Shown here in pieces: positions 2,876 to 25,778 of a stretch of 64,000 nucleotides of DNA (position 1 is its first letter; each line of letters starts with the position of its first letter). Made by a program: the position numbers and the translations under genes. Below the pieces are notes generated by a model, which was given only the letters and a program-made list of their open reading frames with translations, was not told where the DNA came from and searched no databases. The stretch spans positions 4,712,001 to 4,776,000 of the forward strand of contig NC_058369.1 in NCBI RefSeq assembly GCF_018350175.1, read 5' to 3'. This DNA is from Felis catus. Taxonomy: Eukaryota.

Positions 2876-4178
2876 TTGCCTGAGCATTTTATATTTCATC
2901 TTGTTGCTGTTGCAAATGGGGCCTTCTTTTCTAACTGGTGATTTTCGTATACACGTGGGCTACAGACTTCCGTGTTAACGCTATATCCTGCTATTTTGTC
3001 AAATTCTCTAAAGTCTACACTAGTTTGTTGATTTTCTTGAGTTTTCCGAAAATATAATCACATCATCTGCAAACAGACATTGTTTTACCCCCTTCTTTCA
3101 AATTCAGGTCTCTCAAATTGATTTCCGTAATCTCATTGCTTTAGCGAACCTTCTTATACCTTACTAGGTCACAGGAGCAAGAGTGGGCAATTTTATTTTG
3201 TTCCCAATTTAGTGCGGAAGCAAGTTTCCATTAAGATCCTGGCTGAAGATATTTATCAATTCCTACCCTCTTAAAGAATCTGGAATGCATGCTGAACTTT
3301 GTTAATTGCCCTTTCTGTGTTTATGAGGATGATCATATGACTTTTCCCTCTGATGTGAATACAATAAATTGTATTGAACCATCCTTGCTTTCCTGGAATG
3401 AGTCCCACTTGGTTTTTGTTTTGTTTTTAATGCACCAGTGGAGTCTATTTTACAAGGAAATTCTGGAGGAACTAGTAGCAGGTAGAGCTCACAGTGGGCG
3501 GCCATGGAGATCTAGGAAGGTCTTCCTGAGACCAGTCAGGGAGGGGAGGGCAGTGGTATGGGCAGTGGTGAGCTGGGGACTCTGCCTTGCCCAGCGAAGT
3601 ATCTGGGCAAAAGGAAGGAAATTGAAGACTGCTTAAATCCATCTTGGAAGGAATATTTCAATTCAAATATCCACCAACCTAGAACTAAGAAACGGTACAT
3701 CCATAGAGCAGAATTCTGTAACAATCAGGAACTTCCTTAATGTGCCGACACGGAGTCATCTTGTGATACGGAGCGAACAGGATTGAAGGCAAATCAGTAT
3801 CTTCACCACTTGTACAAAAAAGGAGGAAAAAGGACATCAGAGCCAATTTGTTTGTATGGTATATGCCTAAAATAACTCCAGACTGAGACACAAGAAACAA
3901 CTCCTGGGAGGCTGAAACCGGGTGGCTGGGGATGGTGAGGAAGCAAGTCTTCACTCTTCCCTGTTAGCGTTGTTTACTGATGAGCTCTGCCAATGTCCTA
4001 CCCATCCAAAAAAATGAACACGTAAAACACATACTTGGAGCTAAAAAAACCAAGATGCACCCAGGGGGGGCCCGCACAATCCTAGACTCCTGATCTCGGG
4101 GTCGGTGGGGTGGGGGGGTTGGTCAGGGAGCCACTGCACCTTGCCTTTTCCTCATCCAGCCCCTTTGTGGGTGCCTAG

Positions 4179-4370
4179 GTGGGCCGGGCCCCAGACCTCA
4201 TCATGTTTGATTGCTCCATGGATGCGATGGTCTGCAGAGTGTGGCATCGGGGCCAGAAGGAGCACCGGGTTCGTGACTGTGAGTCGGCCCTCCGCCAGGG
4301 CCTAGAGACATACGACACCCTGTGCGAGCCAGTCTTGACCTCCTACCAGCAGAACAACCTGCTCCGAAAC
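4179..4370 (+). pseudogene. Adenylate kinase (AK1-like) penultimate exon, LID/C-terminal region; likely inactivated
   Basis: Acceptor gtgcctAG at 4177-4178. The 192-nt phase-0 exon encodes VGRAPDLIMFDCSMDAMVCRVWHRGQKEHRVRDCESALRQGLETYDTLCEPVLTSYQQNNLLRN. It aligns without gaps to recalled AK1 residues 109-172 ([64 protein letters not shown]), about 20/64 identical. The donor reads GCGGGT instead of GT. Confidence 0.85.
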
Positions 4371-4726
4371 GCGGGTACTCCCTGCTTGCCACTCACCCCC
4401 AACCCCCCAGGGGAACAATGCAGGGGTCATGCCAGGGCCCCACATCCTGGACCTCCCTGGGCCTGTTTCCCCAGCGTGTACTCTGGGACTTTCATTTCTT
4501 CCACTGGGCAGTAATAAGCACAGGCCGTGGCCTTCCAGCTATGACGTTTCGGTCTAAACAGAGTGACTGTCTCCAGAACTGCAACATTAAATACATTTTA
4601 GAATGTATCTACAAAACCTAGGATTATGACAACCCGTTAACCACATTAACCGTGGCTCAACTCCTATCCAGCCATATATATTCTTGGGGCAGGGGGGTGG
4701 GGGTGGGGAGCAGGGATATTTTAATT

Positions 4727-4929
4727 CTTTTTTTAATGTTTATTTATCTTAGAGAAAGAGAGCACAAGCAGGGGAGGGGCAGAGAGAGAGGGAGACACAG
4801 AACCCGAAGCAGGCTCCAGCCTCCGAACTGTCAGCACAGAGCCGGATGCAGGGCTTGAACTCACAGACTGTGAGATGGTGACCTGAGCTGAGGCCAGAAG
4901 CTCAACCGACAGAGCCACCCAGGCACCCC
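4727..4929 (-). mobile_element. Can-SINE in the last intron of the AK-like gene, 15-bp TSD agggatattttaatt
   Basis: Perfect TSD at 4712-4726 and 4930-4944. Confidence 0.93.
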
Positions 4930-5357
4930 AGGGATATTTTAATTATTAAAGTGACCCACCCAGTTTCTCTCCGGTGGAAGGTAGGAGTGCTGCAGAGCCT
5001 AAGATGAAGCGCCCTGTGCAACCGGCTCTCACCGCCGAGGGTGGGATGCGAGGGCAGCAGCCTGGAGGAGGCAGTTCCCCCACACCATCCTCCCTCCCGA
5101 GGCCTGCTCCAGGGGACAGGGTCTCCACCGGGCTCGGGTGGCCGAGTGGCCAGCTGTGATACGGAACGCTGTGTTGCAGCCTTCCTGACTGACCCACTTC
5201 CCTCTTCTGTCACTCGCATGGCTCTGGCATCACACCTCCCGATCCTCTGTGGGCTCTTAGTGAAGAGGCCTGCTAACCTGCTTCCGCCTCAGTGGAGGGG
5301 TGGAGGACAGGGTCCCTGCTGCCACTCAGAACTGACCTCTTGCTCCCCCTCTTCTAG

Positions 5358-5425
5358 ATCTTGGCAGAAGCAGCTCCAGAAGACATTCTGCCCAGTGCTG
5401 CTCTGTCACTGAAAGGCTGCAGTGA
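5358..5425 (+). pseudogene. Adenylate kinase (AK1-like) terminal exon with apparent 1-bp deletion
   Basis: Polypyrimidine tract plus ttctAG at 5356-5357. Reads ILAEAAPEDI, then in a shifted frame AQCCSVTERLQ-TGA (5423-5425). Length is 68 nt versus 69 nt for the recalled AK1 last exon [22 protein letters not shown]. Confidence 0.75.
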
Positions 5426-6264
5426 CGGGAGGGGCTGGGGGCTCTTGCTTCTCCCCTCATCCCAGAGGCCACACAGGGCTCAGAAGGGGTGCAGGGCCTG
5501 TGAGGTAAGAGACCTGGTGACAGGAGGCCAGGCTTTAACCCAAGCTGACTCCCCAGGAGACCCCAGACTGACAGCCCCTTTCTGGGCCAAGGCAGCACGA
5601 GGGTGGGCTGATTGGGGGCCACCACCCACAGGGGTAGGTTCCTAACAAATCTGGATGAGGCCCTGGGGGGGCTGTGAGCTGTTGAGGGCTCCAGTGGTGC
5701 TGCCCTTGGGGCCTCTGGATCCTGAATGGGAAACCGCATCTGTGTTAGCATCCAACTAGACACTCAAAAGGCACCCTACAGCCATCTAGTATGTCTCAAG
5801 ATGGGTACCCCTGGGCCAGACAGCTCAGATGGCCCCTCAGCTCACTCTCCCATCTCCCGTCCTCATCCTTGGGAGGCCACGGCCGCACACCAAGCACTGG
5901 AACTCGGGCCATTTCCCTTCACAGCCCAGGTTTCCGCCTGGGGGGACGCTGACAGACTAGGACCCAGCCAGGTGCGCATCAAGGCGGGGGGGGGGGGGGG
6001 GGGGACGACGACTCCCGAGAGGCACAGCCATGGGTTTGCTGTGCTGGCGGGCTGCATCCATGGAAACACCTGTCCCCAGGGACCCTCCCGGGTGCCTTGC
6101 TCCCCATGTTCCCAGAGGGAACCGGGCTCAACCTGCTATTGCCCTTTCTGCAAGGCAACCCAAGAAGGGCAGTCTTCGGGGGGCCCACACCCCACTCTTA
6201 GAGGCCAACCCCTGTTTCTCTTCAACTTGTTTCCTCTACAAACACAACTGCGGCCAGCACGCAG

Positions 6265-7213
6265 TTTTTAGACAAAAAGCACTTTATTTAACCAAAAAAA
6301 GGGGAGGGGGTTAGGAAAGCACAATGCGCCTGCAGAAAACTATTTTTTCTTATAATTCTTTTTCTTTAAAAAAAAAAAAAAGAAAGAAAGAAAGAAAGAA
6401 AGAAAGAAAAAACACAACACAAAGCTTGTAATTTCCAATCACCATTATCAGGCTTTTACAACATCTATAAAGAACGAACAAACATCTGCTTCAAAACTCT
6501 ACAGGGGGAGAGAGGAGAGAAAGAGACGGCACCCAGCAGACACGGGGAGGTTTTGTTATCATTTATTTGTGAAGTTAAAAACGAGCGATAAAAAGTAAAA
6601 ACTGCCATACAATTTTTTGTTTTGTTCTCAATTTGTTTTCAGTTTCAATGTCCTCTTGAACAGTTGAAACACAAGACCAGTCCCGGGAGGGGGGGTGGGG
6701 TGGGAGGGGGGCGGCGGGAGGGGCTGCAGGGGAGCCGAGCGAGGCGGGAGGAAAGAGGAGGAGCAGAGGCCGAGGGGCTCGACTGAGGGGGGAGAAGGGG
6801 GGGTCCTGAAATAGCAACACCTGGTCCAAGGAATGTTCCAACTCTAACTAAAAAAAAGAAATAGCAAGAGTGACTTTTTTTCCTTTTTAAAAGTTTATTT
6901 TAAAAACACGAAGAGGGCCAAGGGTGGTAGGAAGAAAATGAATTGCTTTCCCCTGAAAGAGGCAGTTTCAGGAAGGGATAGAGATTTTTATATATATATA
7001 TATAATTTTATAGGTTTTGTTTGCTTTTTGTGTTTTTTATATTTAAATTTTTTTTTTTTTTTGGCAGAGATTTAATTCTATCTTCTATGGCTGGCTCAAC
7101 ATGAAAGATCCCAATTTTGAAAGAAAAAAAGCATGAGACACACAGAATGAGCGAGAGAGTGAGAGCCCAGCATCGCCTGGGGCATGACCTCCAAGCCACT
7201 CACAGCGAGGGCG
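6265..7213 (-). other. KHSRP: KHSRP distal 3' UTR with U-rich tracts
   Basis: Non-TE A-rich (+)/U-rich (mRNA) sequence resembling the recalled human KHSRP 3' UTR (e.g. TTTCAAAATTGGGATC...TAAATCTCTGCCAAAA). Confidence 0.8.
6283..6288 (-). terminator. KHSRP distal poly(A) signal AATAAA (further copies at 6562-6567 and 6894-6899)
   Basis: TTTATT on +, with GU-rich downstream sequence on the minus strand (about 6240-6260). Confidence 0.75.
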
Positions 7214-8378
7214 NNNNNNNNNNNNNNNNNNNNNNNNNNNNNNNNNNNNNNNNNNNNNNNNNNNNNNNNNNNNNNNNNNNNNNNNNNNNNNNNNNNNNNN
7301 NNNNNNNNNNNNNNNNNNNNNNNNNNNNNNNNNNNNNNNNNNNNNNNNNNNNNNNNNNNNNNNNNNNNNNNNNNNNNNNNNNNNNNNNNNNNNNNNNNNN
7401 NNNNNNNNGGGGAGGGGAGGAAGGGGCGGGAGACTGGGGGGGACGGTGGCGAGGAGGGGGCCAGGAAGCCCCTCCCCTGAACCTGTGGCGAGCTGTAACT
7501 GTCTAGGCAAGTGCTCCGGGGAACTCGGCCGAAGTCAGACTGGCTCCTTGATGGAGGAGGAGGAGGAGGAGGAGAAAGAGTGACGTAAAGACCAGGAGGA
7601 GAGAAGCGGGGTGGGGGGAGCCGCAGAGACAGAGCGGGGGGGGGGGGGGGGGAGAGAAGGAGAGAAGCGCGCTTGGGGTTTGGGAGGGAGGAGGGGTGCC
7701 CTCTGTCCTCAGGAAGGCAGGTGCTCCGGCGCATCACAACATGACAATGTCAGAGATCACGGTGTCCCCACAACACCCCTGTGAGGTAGGTTGGAAGGTG
7801 GCGGCGATCGTCATGCCCACTTCACAGACAAAACCGGGACACAGAGGCAGGCGCGAGAGCGGAGGAGGCAGAGCCCGGGGAGGGGGGCGGAGAAGGGGGT
7901 GCGGGGGGGGGGGCCCTGGGGCCGGCCCCCTTGGCAAGCTCCCCGAGTCCCAGCAGAGCCAGGGCTGACCCGCGCGGGGGCCGCCTGCAACACACAGTCA
8001 CTTGGACACGGGGGAAAGACCGTGGGGTTAAAAATAAAAGAATGCCAGGAACAAAACCCAAAAAAGTAACGCGGAGAGGGGAAAACACATCCGTTTTCTT
8101 CCCGAGTGGCCAGATTTTGAGTGAGCGAGCGAGCAGCCAGGATGGCGACCGACGTCTGTGCCGCTGGCCTGCCCCCCCACCCCCAGGACTACCCACCAGT
8201 TCAACAGTTCCACCTTGTATTGGTTTCGCGCTCTCCCCCAGCATCGCGACAGCGTGACACAGGAACAAGCGGGCCGGCGCAGGGAGGCCTCTTCGTTTAA
8301 CCTCTGGACCCAGCGCACACTTCCCCAGCTCGTGGGGACTCCCGGAGACCTCTGGCCACACGGCCCCCGCTGCAGGCA

Positions 8379-11300
8379 TCAAGGACACACCCCGNNNNNN
8401 NNNNNNNNNNNNNNNNNNNNNNNNNNNNNNNNNNNNNNNNNNNNNNNNNNNNNNNNNNNNNNNNNNNNNNNNNNNNNNNNNNNNNNNNNNNNNNNNNNNN
8501 NNNNNNNNNNNNNNNNNNNNNNNNNNTGGGGGCCGCCGGGACCTGGAGTCTGTCCGTAGTAAGCGGCCTGCTGTCTGTAATATTCAGCCCAGGCGGCACT
8601 GTAGTCTGGCTGGGAGCCTGGGGGAGCTCCCGGACCCCCTCCGGTGGCCACTTGAGCTGCGGGCAAGCAGAGGGTGAGCGAGTGAGGCCAGGAGCCGGAG
8701 GACCTGGACCCAGCGCTGCCCCGCCCCCAGAGCCCCCAGCAGCTCACCCTGCTTCTTGTAGTACTCCTCCCAGGCCTTCGTGTAGTCCTGTTGTGGCGGT
8801 GCTCCGGGCTGCTGGGGCTGCTGGCCTGCAGGAGGGAGGCGGCGGGAGGTCAGAGGACGGACGGCACCGGGACCTGGCTGCCTCTCACCAGCCTCCGGCC
8901 TGAGCCCCCGAGGTCGCCCGCACACTCACCAATCTTCTTGTAATACTCTTCCCAGGCCTTAGTGTAGTCCGACTGGCCGGCGGGTGGGGGCTGAGGGGGC
9001 TCCCCCTGGGCAGGTGGGGCCGCGGGGGCTGGCGCAGGGCCGGGCACGGGGCCTGGGGGCTGCTGGTAGTAGTGTGAGTAGTAGGCGGCCCAGGCGGCAT
9101 TGGGGTCTGCGGCGGCTGCAGCTTTATCTGTGGGAGGGTGGCGTGGGCTGAGGGGCGGTGCGGGAGGCCAGCCCTGCCCTCCCCACCGGGGCAGCCACGC
9201 CCTGCCCTGCCCCTCATCTGGGCAGCCTACTTACTTGGGTCGTGAGGAGCAGGTGGCTGCCACTGGGGGTAGGTATTGCCCCAGCCCTGGGGTGGGTACT
9301 GGTGAGGAGGCGGCCCCCCCGCACTGCAGGACAGAGAAGGGGCGACGGGTGAGCCGGGACTGTCGCTCCACGGGGGCAGGCCCGGCTGGCAGGAAAGGGG
9401 CCCAGGCCTGGCCACAGGCTCCTCGCCCAGGAAAAGGCGAGACGATCAATGCCAAAAGAGACACACTGTGCTGCTCTGGGATGTGAAAGTCCCCCAAATA
9501 CAACGTCCATGAGTTTGCCCGTTAGGTGGGAGACTACGGTCAACATCTGTGCTGTCTATGGAACAGGAGGCTGGGCTGGGCCGTGCCTAGGGCCGAGACC
9601 ATTAGCACATCTTGATGTGAGTGAAAACGGGGCCCGTGGCTCTTCCTGCCAGCACAGCAGCCCCTGAGCCCCAAATCCCAGGAGGCGGAGACCAATACTC
9701 ACTGCGGGGGAGCCCCAGGTGGCCCCTGGTTGAAAGGCCCGGGGTTGAAGGGCCCCATGGGGCCGGCAGGGCCTGGTCCCCCTGGGCCTGGTCCAACTGG
9801 GCAGAGGGGGCCCTGGAGGAAGGAGAAGCAGATGGTCAGTGGAAGGAAGGGGGGGGCGGTTGAGAAACAGGAGCCGGGTCCAGGCTCTAAGAAGCCCTCC
9901 CGAGCCCACCTCAATCTTTTCCTCAATGAGCTGTTTGGCGTGGTCAATCTGTTGGGGTGAGCCCCGGATGATGAACAATTTGAAATTGGGGTCCCCGTTG
10001 GGCGGCAGCTGCCGGGAGATCTCCACAAAGGCGCCTGTCTGCTGGTTTATGGCTTTCACATTTTCGCCACCTGTGGGAGCCACAGGCAGTGAAGGGCGGG
10101 CAGGAGAGGGCAGGAGAGGAGTGGAGTGCATGTGGGGCGCAGGTGGGGCCTACTCACCTCGGCCGATGACCAGCCCACACTTGTGAGTGGGGATGGAGAA
10201 GGTCATCTCTCCACCAGGGGGGCCCCAGTTGCCTTGGCCCCTTCCTCGCCCCCGGCCCCCCGGGGGCATGCCAGGACCCCCTGGAGGGCCTGGGGGTCCA
10301 CTCTGCAAGACAGGGAGGAGAGGGAGTGAACACAGAAAGCCAGCCTGGCCCCTGGACTCCTCTGGTGGGGCCGGGCCAGCCCCCCTCTGCACCCACCAGC
10401 TGTTGGCCGCACATCCCAGTGTCACCTACCCTGAGGCTCTGGAGGAGATCATTGATGATCCGTGCTGCGTGCTCACACCGGTCTGGGGGCCCCATTATGT
10501 GAGCTATCTTCTCGGGACCTGTCCCATCATCTGAAGCCGGCACCCACAGAACAGAGATGGATTTTAAGGAAAAGCACAACGCCAAGCCCCCATAACACCG
10601 CCTCTGCGAGGTAGACATCATGCCAAGCCAGGTGTCAGAAATATCTCGGGCTCAAACTGCCGCTCACCACGCTCCCAAGTATTGAGGAGCGGGCGGGAAA
10701 TGCCGGTGGGCCCACATTTCCAGATGAGAAAACCGACCACTGAGGACAGGGTGGCAGCCGAGGCTTCTTCCTGTTTAGGGCACCCCAGGACTAATAGGTG
10801 CCTTTTACTGAGCTAAAAAGGACAATAGACCTCTGAAAGGCAACAGAGCAATCCTTCCTCCCCACAGGCCTGCCACTTGGGAGACTGAGCTGGGGCAGTG
10901 ATCTGATCTGGTCCAGGCTGCCCCCAGTCAGGATGGGCTACGTGGTAGGGAAGAGGAAAAGGGACAGATCGGGTGACAGAAGACATCGCCTTTGGACTTC
11001 AGAAATGTGTTGGGAAGTGTGTCCCTCAGCAACTCTCTCACATGGCTGTGCCCTCTTCCACTGTGGCGAAGGAGGCACCACAAGGAGGTCCCAAACTCAA
11101 CAAGGTTCACACCGCAGTACCAAGGCATCTCAGCGGACTCTCGGAAGAATCCCTAGGACACAGCTGGTGGCACAGTCACCCTCCAGCCAACTCATCTGTT
11201 CGGCGAAGCCCCTGACCTTGCTTAAACTGTATCCGCACGCCAGCATCATTCTGGATCTTCTTGATCATCTCTCCGCTCCGGCCAATAACCACCCCGACAG

Positions 11301-14300
11301 AATGCCTGGGCACCGGCACCTGAGGAAGGGGTGGGGGAGGGTCCAGCTGGGTCCTGTCCCCGCAGCTGTGGCGCCCTCCGCCCACTGCACCCAGCCCATG
11401 GCCCTCCATTATCGGGGGAGGCCTGCACTCACGTCAATGCCCCCACCAATCCGGGATCCGTACTCGTTCCGGTCCCCAAAGCCACCCTGGTCACGCTCCC
11501 GGAGGATGTCCATCACCATCTCGCAGGCTTGCTGCAAACACACAGGGCACGCTCTACTCCAACACCGTTCCCCGGCATCCCACCACCCAAGGGCCCACGG
11601 GCCGAGGCTGAGCCCATCAGCGCCCCGCTGAGCTCCTGCCCTGCTGTCCCGAGAGGAAGGAGGAAGGATGGCCAGCAACCCCCATTTTCCAGATAGGAAA
11701 ATGAAAGATCAGAGTTTAGGCCTCTTACTTGTGTCCAGCACTGGGAGGGACAGCTCAGCATGAGAGCGCTCTCGAATACTGCTTCCCCTTTCAATCAAAT
11801 CCCGAGCCCCATCTGTCGCTCACTTCTCCAGGTGCCCCAACACCCCGGGGTTCTCACCTGCACTTTGTAAGGATCCCCAATGATGCGAAGAGGCTTGTCC
11901 ACGTTTGTGTTCTGGGAGCCATCTTGAATTAAAATCATCTTCACTCCAGCTCTTTCCTTCACAACCAATGTGGAGAGTCAGTGCTGGGCTTTCAAAGGAC
12001 TTTCTGGGGCTAGTGCACGTGGGTGGGGCAGATATGACCACGAGGGTAAGAGGCTCTGGCAAAGCAGCCGGCGGGGTATGCACACGCAGATGCAGGAAGG
12101 AGACTTTCCTGGGACAGGAGGAGCTTCCGTCCCAGCCCTCACCTGCAGCTGCTTAATGGTCTCGCCACCTTTGCCGATGACCAGGCCAGCCTTCCCTGCG
12201 GGGATCATGATCTCCTGTACAGTGCCGTTCTGGCCCCCGTTGGCATTGTCGTGGAACTGTCCTGGGGGGCCCCCACGACCCCGAGAGACGATGTCATCCA
12301 GCATCATCTTTGCTTTCCTGGGAAGGAGAAGACTGGGACTGAGACACCTGAGAGAGTACTGGCCTGACAGCCCCGTCCAGCTCAAAGGGAAGAAGGTGAG
12401 TCCGACACGCGTGTCTGGCAAATGACGACGAGGAAGAGGGTCCATCCCCGGGGCTAGGGCTGGGGCCATTCGGGTTGTTTTCCCAGATCTTCGGAGTCAG
12501 GGGAATCGAAAATCAGTACAGTCCCCGGCGAGGGCGACGCCCCCAACTTTCCAAAGGATGGAGAGACCTTCTGCTTGTTCCCCTCATCACAAGGGCCCAG
12601 CAAGGGACTTACTGGACAGACTCCGGGGCTCCTGTCAAGGATACGCTGCGCTCTGGTAGGCCACCGCTGTCTGGAGAAAAGAAACAGGGTCAATGCCTTT
12701 CTGAGTCTGTGGACACCGGAGAAAGGCTTTCTATGGAGATGACGAAAGTTGCACTACCAGTGGCCACTTCTGCCACCATTCAGTGGCCTGACAAACCACT
12801 ACCTTGCCAAACACCCGGGAGGCTACTCTATGCAAGACCAAGGTCAGGAAGCTCACAGTCCAGGAAAGGAGACAGATCTTTCAGGGACAAAGACGAGATA
12901 GAAGGAGATGTCCTGAACCTAGGCCACTTCTGCCACCGTTGAGGACCACACATGCACTCTCCACGGCCTATGAAGCCCACTACGTCAGAGCAAGTCCTCA
13001 GACACCCCTGCACAGCAGTCCTTGCCTGGCCTTCAAATCTAGGCCTGGCCTCAAAGTCGTTCCCTTGAAGGCACCTCCCTGCTTCACACGTTCTCACTGA
13101 TTTTCCACCAGGTGCTTAGTTCAGATGGTGACTTAACTAATCGCTTAGAGCAGGATCTAAAACAAGACTTTTTTTTTTTTTTTTTAAAGTAGGCTCCAAA
13201 CCCAGCATGGAGCCCAATGCGGGGCTTGTACTCTCGACCCTGAGATCAAGACCTGAGCTAAGATCAAGAGTCAGACGCTTTATCAACGGAGCCACCCAGG
13301 CGCCCCTAGAACAAGACTTCCTATATTCAATTTTCGACTCTCCACCTCAGCCCTCCCCCTGCAAGCGTACAATGGAAGAAACCAAAGTTGCAGCCACACC
13401 GCAGGGCACTGTGCTGTACGAGTGGAGACCCTGCCCTGAGCCCGGCACACAGAAAGCACTCGGTGAACACCAACCCATCTCACTTCTGTCCTGTCGGAGT
13501 CCAGCCCAACCCCCCACGCCCGTCGTGACACAAGTCTGGCTCTCCTACCTGGAGAGATCTGGACTTTGCAGCCTGAATCCTGCTGGATTTTGTTAATCTG
13601 TTCACCTCCTCTGCCAATGACTAGGTGGAGAAAAAGGAAAAAATAGAAAGGATTGGTGAGGGTACCCTAGCGCTGAGAAGACTGTGGCAGGGGTTCCTGG
13701 CCTCCCCTCCCCAGAGAGCTCCACCATCCTCCCGGCCCAGAGTGGACAGGTGAGAGCGGAGCGGACTACAGGAGGCCTGCTCAGACCAAAGGCTCTGGGC
13801 CAACAGGGGCTCCCAGGGCGCGGTCCCTGACAGGGTGTGATGGGCATCCCACAGTGACCCACTCACTTAGTCCCACCATGCCATCTGGGACCCTGTACTC
13901 TTCTGTCATTGAAGTCCTGCAAAGACAGATGGTAACAATCAGTCTCAAGTGGGAAAGAAGACAGGGGGAGGGGAATGGAAGAGACGGGAGAGCCTCCAGG
14001 AGAAAAGGCCGCTGGAAGCCAGAGCTCCTAACCTGTTCCTAGGCCACAGCTCCTAACCTGCAGGGTCCTTGGTGCTTCCAGCCTCTGGCCCTGCTTCCCA
14101 CCCAGGGCAGGCCTAAGCAGAATCCTAAGAGAGTACAGGACCCCCTCTCCCCACAGCAAGCCACTCAACCTCTCGAGGACTCATCTTCCCCATTCGGGCC
14201 ATGAGAGGCTTGGTTGAGGTCAGCGTGGCCCCTGAACTAGTGCTGTTCCACTGATTCAGGACAAGAGTGTTCTGTAAACACTCAGACACGTTTACAGAAT

Positions 14301-19604: not shown

Positions 19605-25778
<6,174 letters not shown>

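Follow-up and report, generated by a model that had tools for sequence, protein, structure and literature searches.

Do two short blocks of unique sequence near the left end of this window (64 kb of the cat genome, the whole stretch of DNA that was analysed) belong to an adenylate kinase gene, to which one, and does that gene still work in cats? The first-pass annotation, made from the letters alone, had read them as the tail of a hidden, intron-containing AK1-like remnant that converges on the 3' end of KHSRP.

Two terminal exons and their matches

The identification turns on five features, all on the forward strand:

4150..4178 (+): pyrimidine tract and AG acceptor (4177-4178) of the penultimate exon, from sequence reading
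4179..4370 (+): penultimate coding exon of the cat AK1-like gene, 64 stop-free codons for the LID and C-terminal core
4371..5357 (+): last intron, 987 nt from the canonical donor, from sequence reading
5325..5357 (+): strong pyrimidine tract and AG acceptor (5356-5357) of the terminal exon, from sequence reading
5358..5425 (+): terminal coding exon of 68 nt, from protein matches in two frames

The penultimate exon corresponds to AK1 residues about 109-172, and in a search of 177,635 PDB sequences (phmmer) it found the AK1 chains 3adk and 1z83 with E about 1e-5, query residues 4-63 lying on chain residues 113-172 with no gap; the CMPK1 match in the PDB sequence search was weaker (E 0.03). Its identity to a genuine AK1 (Tupaia, P0164) is 30.8% over 65 residues, so the ungapped alignment at about 31% identity proposed at first pass was reproduced over 113-172. 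Against 1.8 billion representative sequences the exon matched 57 proteins, with best E values of 3e-37 to 1e-15, and the best matches were not AK1 but proteins that NCBI names "adenylate kinase isoenzyme 1-like" (E 2e-21 to 3e-37; for those of other species, E down to about 1e-21). The window exons, which were searched separately rather than as a joined spliced peptide, are 59-74% identical to the AK1-like proteins of dog, mustelids and rabbit, versus 31% to AK1. A check against the Pfam ADK family (PF00406) gave a split answer: the exon alone scores 17.3 bits, under the cut-off of 26.8, and the cat RefSeq model of which it is part reaches 43.4 bits (lynx 90, rabbit 141.6).

The exon limits, VGRAP...LLRN for the penultimate exon and ILAE...LQ-stop for the terminal one, are common to cat and to orthologues in dozens of species, and VGRAP starts the penultimate exon in all other-species models, both exon-skipping and full-length. 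Both acceptors proposed at first pass were confirmed, each following a pyrimidine tract, and with the 987-nt intron they bear out the description of an adenylate kinase gene tail with introns. The low identity to AK1 itself (31%) is the one observation, with nothing beyond it, that could suggest chance similarity or a processed (retrocopied) AK1 pseudogene; we ruled out both, and they keep next to no probability against the E values to AK1-like proteins among 1.8 billion sequences, the two collinear exons with acceptors and an intron with splice signals between them, and the exon limits shared with orthologues. The blocks form the 3' end of the coding sequence, its final two exons, in the cat orthologue of a tetrapod-wide AK1-like gene.

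That gene is not hidden. It is already annotated in cat and in more than 80 other tetrapods: the cat RefSeq models XP_023099901.1 and XP_023099917.1 cover precisely both exons, the former being 100% identical to the window over 4179-4373 and 5363-5422. Their RefSeq names, 'AK5 isoform X7' and 'UMP-CMP kinase isoform X9', are misleading, the second being a naming artefact. Ensembl and UniProt call the rodent gene "predicted gene 17949" (Gm17949). The human protein NP_001308530.1 bears the family name in our match table, the human comparison being by name only, and human LOC390877, which the first-pass annotation had named as AK1-like, is indeed listed as 'adenylate kinase isoenzyme 1-like' (PMC10171165).

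Protein queries from cat, lynx, mustelids, rabbit and dog, together with AK1, found no further adenylate kinase exons in the 64-kb window, only 4179-4370 and 5358-5425, in agreement with the expectation that the P-loop exons lie to its left. SINE copies (GGGGAGGGGCAGAGAGAGAGGGAGACACAGAA-type cores) at 200-330, 1240-1400, 1640-1790, 2700-2850 and 4722-4932 fill much of the large upstream intron, the last of them, at about 4722-4932 in the last intron, being a probable reverse-oriented carnivore SINE by its resemblance to the consensus; a (TG)n run lies at about 440-470. An Arctic fox model (P0003) matches 3442-3561 (+) with its 39 N-terminal residues, at 67.5% identity and within a 129-codon stop-free stretch (3247-3633), and this match reflects either an alternative upstream exon in the fox annotation or neutral similarity between cat and fox introns.

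A short-LID kinase family in tetrapods

In a maximum-likelihood tree the AK1-like proteins form a clade of their own (support 100/98), separate from the AK1 clade (97/91), which includes lamprey, so that the first-pass proposal of an AK1-like paralogue withstood the tree check. Judged by sequence, the gene is a paralogue of AK1 and AK5. The C-terminal domain of AK5 comes out as sister to the AK1-like clade with weak support (93/69), a relation that a long-branch effect may explain. Members came from placentals, marsupials, turtles, alligator, lizards, salamanders and caecilians, and a clade spanning amphibians to placentals upholds the claim that the gene is old. No fish or bird members were seen among the best matches of the newt protein, and ray and sturgeon entries named 'AK1-like' group with AK1 in the tree.

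Full-length members have about 212 residues, carry the P-loop motif GGPG(C/S)GKGTQC and end in ILAEEAPENIFAKCCSVIESLQ. The structure predicted for the rabbit member from a 40-sequence alignment (mean pLDDT 93) superposes on human AK1-Ap5A with an rmsd of 1.2 Å and TM 0.94-0.95, at 45% identity over 192-195 columns. The LID is short, having no insertion of about 27 residues between the equivalents of R132 and R138, as the first pass had held and as both the ungapped exon alignment and the rabbit fold match indicate. This is a genuine short-LID AK1-type kinase family. Intact orthologues keep the catalytic residues in 34-35 of 36 models, except that R97 is kept in 27 of 36 because several models skip exon 5, and this conservation suggests that intact members are active. 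The start MG(L/R/N)C in 27 of 30 full-length models suggests in turn that the family would be lipid-anchored like AK1-beta, a comparison for which we take the AK1-beta anchor as given and draw on the N-termini of AK1 models in this analysis.

To our knowledge, this AK1-like paralogue is missing from the usual AK1-AK9 list. A search of the open-access literature found no paper characterising the AK1-like family; 'Gm17949' was absent from the open literature searched, and 'LOC390877' and 'adenylate kinase isoenzyme 1-like' occurred there only in gene lists, which agrees with the description of the gene as little-studied. A 2026 paper on the rat genome (T2T) lists the gene among 'novel genes', at Chr9:6.77 Mb (PMC13477028).

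Lesions in the cat coding sequence

The cat penultimate exon has 64 codons, versus 65 in other species, through a one-codon deletion (DL-IM vs DIVIV). Its length equals that of AK1 because this codon was deleted in the cat family, the norm of the AK1-like family being 65; likewise the terminal exon has 68 rather than 69 nt because of a 1-nt deletion. The exon lengths that had suggested a match to the last exons of AK1 were thus as described, while the match itself is partly a coincidence of cat-family deletions.

Two further changes in the window, in AK1 numbering, are D140R and R149G, both at active-site positions. For alignment and rate counts the two exon translations were joined with an X at the frameshift. 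In the 40-sequence alignment of AK1-like and AK1 proteins the window exons hold nine invariant columns, of which cat alters two, T142A and R167G in rabbit numbering (R167 being AK1 R149); D158R (AK1 D140) falls in a nearly invariant column. Cat also departs at 6 of the 27 columns that are invariant in 24 other mammals. With W at the R97 equivalent in the cat model, the catalytic set R44, R97, R132, R138, D140, D141 and R149 is incomplete in cat. The frame and catalytic lesions are absent in the rabbit, rodent, mustelid, marsupial, turtle and newt members.

Could the cat gene nevertheless encode an active, divergent short-LID adenylate kinase? The exon retains the equivalents of R128, R132, R138 and D141 as well as the LETY and EPV motifs, and GGPGCGKGTQC is still present in other cat-family models (lynx, puma and lion). 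Set against these are the window's D140R and R149G, the cat model's R97W, the R44T or R44P of other cats, the frameshifted C-terminus and the sub-threshold Pfam score of the exon alone. We rejected an active cat kinase on the catalytic replacements and the frameshift, and regard it as very improbable.

We consider it probable, with good confidence, that the cat copy is a unitary pseudogene or a decaying non-catalytic remnant that is still modelled as coding; RefSeq still classes the locus as protein-coding. For the cat copy, then, "remnant" was the correct word. Several observations count against the pseudogene reading: no premature stop interrupts the 64-codon exon, RefSeq keeps its protein-coding class, and, as taken up below, the ancestral end of the protein can still be reached and amino-acid divergence among cats is modest.

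Splice donors and the frame of the terminal exon

How the two exons are joined depends on three further features:

4371..4372 (+): GC in place of the ancestral GT splice donor, from the sequence and from other-species read-through models
4375..4376 (+): alternative GT donor at +4 nt, the exon then ending at 4374, from RefSeq cat-family models
5643..5645 (+): TAA, the first stop met in the frame of the canonical donor, with 5358-5642 stop-free

Models that read through the donor (walrus, mink, camel, lion, lynx) give N/VG, that is GTG GGT, at this position. The donor codon is V (GTG) in lion and lynx and A (GCG) in cat, Geoffroy's cat, puma and cheetah. The exon frame is open through the donor to 4511 (111 codons; region 4371-4618, +), and RefSeq models of cheetah and lion retain the intron and translate the read-through.

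The terminal exon has lost 1 nt in a Phe codon at 5388-5389, which shifts its frame. The cat exon reads ILAEAAPEDI, then CT, then AQCCSVTERLQ-stop, where other species have ILAEAAPENIFAKCCSVVESLQ-stop, and proteins of Mustela, rabbit and dog match it in two frames (5358-5390 and 5390-5422). The CCSV signature is thus retained in the post-deletion frame, and only that shifted frame reaches the TGA at 5423-5425, the ancestral stop; the frame from the canonical donor leads to an unrelated tail of about 85 residues. The first-pass annotation was right that a 68-nt terminal exon is present but not that it is in register, the TGA lying outside the entering frame. With the 1-nt deletion and the GC donor, an intact reading frame through the last two exons is absent in cat.

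The +4 donor changes this outcome. XP_023099901.1 (P0001) reads ...LLRN-A-D-LGRSSS, or AAC GCG G/AT CTT GGC, joining 4374 to 5358, and the GT at 4375-4376 is used by RefSeq models of cat, Geoffroy's cat, puma and lynx. Combined with the deletion of 1 nt, the +4 donor restores the frame for AQCCSVTERLQ-stop, the last 11 residues, which RefSeq models recover only in this way. The cat-family models that use it have 12 unrelated residues (ADLGRSSSRRHS) in place of ILAEAAPENIF, a segment that in the rabbit predicted structure makes up the last beta-strand and opens the terminal helix. A dog isoform (P0126) uses the same +4 donor, the outcome in dog being a frameshifted tail, and the donor may be a minor splice site older than the cat-family deletion.

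The restored final residues and ancestral stop can be read as compensation under selection, and so count against the pseudogene reading. On this account the cat-family gene is alive as a non-enzyme, the +4 donor shift offsetting the 1-nt deletion to give a short, acylated membrane pseudo-kinase that has kept both its MGLC and its CCSV..LQ ends. Having lost the canonical GT, the cat gene would be forced onto the +4 donor; frames stay open in the models from six cat-family species, and MGLCKS is present in the cat model. Yet a restored tail is no more than would be expected soon after a frameshift, and the 12 replaced residues take in the final beta-strand and the beginning of the terminal helix. 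The cat X7 and X9 models are without the whole P-loop half of the fold, and cat-family models are mutually inconsistent, with intron retention in some and an extra 3' exon; the lineage is accelerated 3-6 fold; and lynx and lion, which still have the canonical GT, show that the "forced" donor does not hold throughout the family. We regard a living non-enzyme as unlikely and keep to the reading of a pseudogene or decaying remnant.

Beyond the terminal exon, the C-terminal 85 residues of an unnamed, lion-like MetaClust model (P0002) match 5927-6198 (+) at 71-100% identity, and at least one old prediction adds a 3' exon that ends about 70 nt from the poly-A signal of the converging gene.

Erosion in cats and in other mammals

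The codon deletion and the equivalents of D140R and R149G recur in the models of lynx, puma, lion, cheetah and Geoffroy's cat; in cat-family models the R97 equivalent is W and the R44 equivalent T or P (P or T in the lynx, puma and lion models). Since these lesions are common to big and small cats, the erosion predates their split. Relative-rate counts, for which the outgroup was horse, mole, manatee or mouse lemur, gave 20-27 replacements unique to cat in exons 5-7 versus 3-11 unique to the dog-side carnivores (p 6e-5 to 0.04); for the window exons by themselves the counts were 13-18 versus 2-7. Overall, unique amino-acid changes in the cat lineage are 3-6 times those of dog-side carnivores. 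The lynx end branch of the maximum-likelihood tree measures 0.46 against a median of 0.092 (five times). Cat and lion differ at 4 of the 64 residues of the penultimate exon, a modest divergence within the family that fits neutrality or weak constraint alike.

Eroded models also occur elsewhere, in gibbons, macaques, banteng and cetaceans (P0102, P0110, P0161, P0165, P0307, P0138 and P0142): gibbon models have R97W and R149S, macaque models are without exon 5 and whale models have R44W. This pattern suggests independent, repeated erosion across several mammal lineages, in which the gene seems dispensable. Among PDB entries, 8x1g and 7de3 are by their titles structures of the human AK1 mutants R97W and R128W.

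The converging neighbour

Downstream of the two exons, three features were placed on the reverse strand:

6283..6288 (-): AATAAA, the likely end of a converging KH-domain (KHSRP-like) gene, from a motif search
9556-10131 and 11978-12469 (-): KH_1 domains, from Pfam
20771-21061 (-): mitochondrial-carrier exon, from a Pfam test of one exon

The proposed convergence on the end of KHSRP therefore fits the minus-strand KH-domain gene that we see, beyond which lies a mitochondrial-carrier exon. The gene order expected for the AK1-like group would have it between GTF2F1 and KHSRP, beside SLC25A41 and SLC25A23; what the window shows downstream is the KH-domain gene and the carrier exon. A regular-expression search for mitochondrial-carrier signatures found nothing; the Pfam test of one exon was positive. 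Neither AATAAA nor ATTAAA occurs on the + strand in 4951-8032, so that an AK1-like transcript would need a non-canonical signal or an antisense run into the end of the KH-domain gene. Between the converging gene ends lie a run of about 22 G (5985-6006) and an (AAAG)n microsatellite (6378-6410), and N-masked stretches fall inside the KH-domain gene (7214-7408 and 8395-8526).

The first-pass annotation had seen here a small adenine-nucleotide gene cluster. In human, AK1, SLC25A25 and FUBP3 lie together at 9q34, and AK5 and FUBP1 at 1p31. If this map holds, the neighbourhood would be synteny inherited from ancient genome duplications, a simpler account than a functional cluster.

A model of the intact gene and of its decay

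An intact gene would encode a short-LID protein of ~212 residues with the AK1 fold and an N-terminal MG-x-C, which we infer to be a membrane-anchored adenylate kinase catalysing ATP + AMP <-> 2 ADP. In the cat family the gene would have been freed from constraint, its catalytic residues then being replaced, one codon deleted and the last exon frameshifted by 1 nt, and in cat the ancestral donor would have become GC. Cat transcripts, if made, would yield products incapable of kinase activity: a protein with the read-through tail, a product of intron retention, or the +4-donor protein, in which 12 unrelated residues would supplant the terminal beta-strand and the start of the helix. The gene's identity, its exon structure, the lesions and the faster rate are direct observations; lost activity, lack of function and the membrane anchor are the proposed part of this model.

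A bolder composite can be drawn, to which we give little weight and which we doubt: that the gene is an uncharacterised tenth vertebrate adenylate kinase paralogue, an ancient AK1/AK5 duplicate that kept the acylated, membrane-anchored form and was lost repeatedly (in cats, cattle, whales, apes and monkeys), and that the short, non-catalytic, acylated cat protein, compensated by the +4 donor, has taken on a new role.

In cat genome annotation this locus would best be marked as a gene in decay rather than as a functioning kinase. The wider interest is in a well-conserved AK1 paralogue, held from newts to rabbits, with the AK1 fold and a likely lipid anchor; it is a candidate for functional study in mouse or rabbit, and it offers a small case study of recurrent gene loss.

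Comparison with known adenylate kinases

The closest relatives are the predicted AK1-like genes (LOC390877, Gm17949), which are the same gene by their shared exon limits and C-terminal KCCSV(I/V)ESLQ signature; only the cat-family copy differs from the rabbit, rodent, mustelid, marsupial, turtle and newt members in its lesions. AK1 shares the short-LID fold and aligns with the exon ungapped over 113-172, and the rabbit orthologue superposes on it at 1.2 Å and 45% identity. The MG..C motif in N-termini of the AK1-beta type (Tupaia and caecilian AK1 models) resembles the AK1-like N-terminus. The AK1-like proteins differ from AK1 in forming a separate clade, in their identity of 31% (cat exon) to 45% (intact members), in their C-terminus (ILAEEAPENIFAKCCSVIESLQ), in their own locus beside a KH-domain gene, and in that the acyl-motif exon appears to be the main N-terminus rather than an alternative one. 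The C-terminal domain of AK5 belongs to the same fold family, the rabbit AK1-like model being 43-44% identical to PDB 2bwj, whereas AK5 has two kinase domains and no acylation motif. CMPK1 is a related short-LID NMP kinase (29-33% identity in the fold search) and is clearly more distant than AK1 and AK5.
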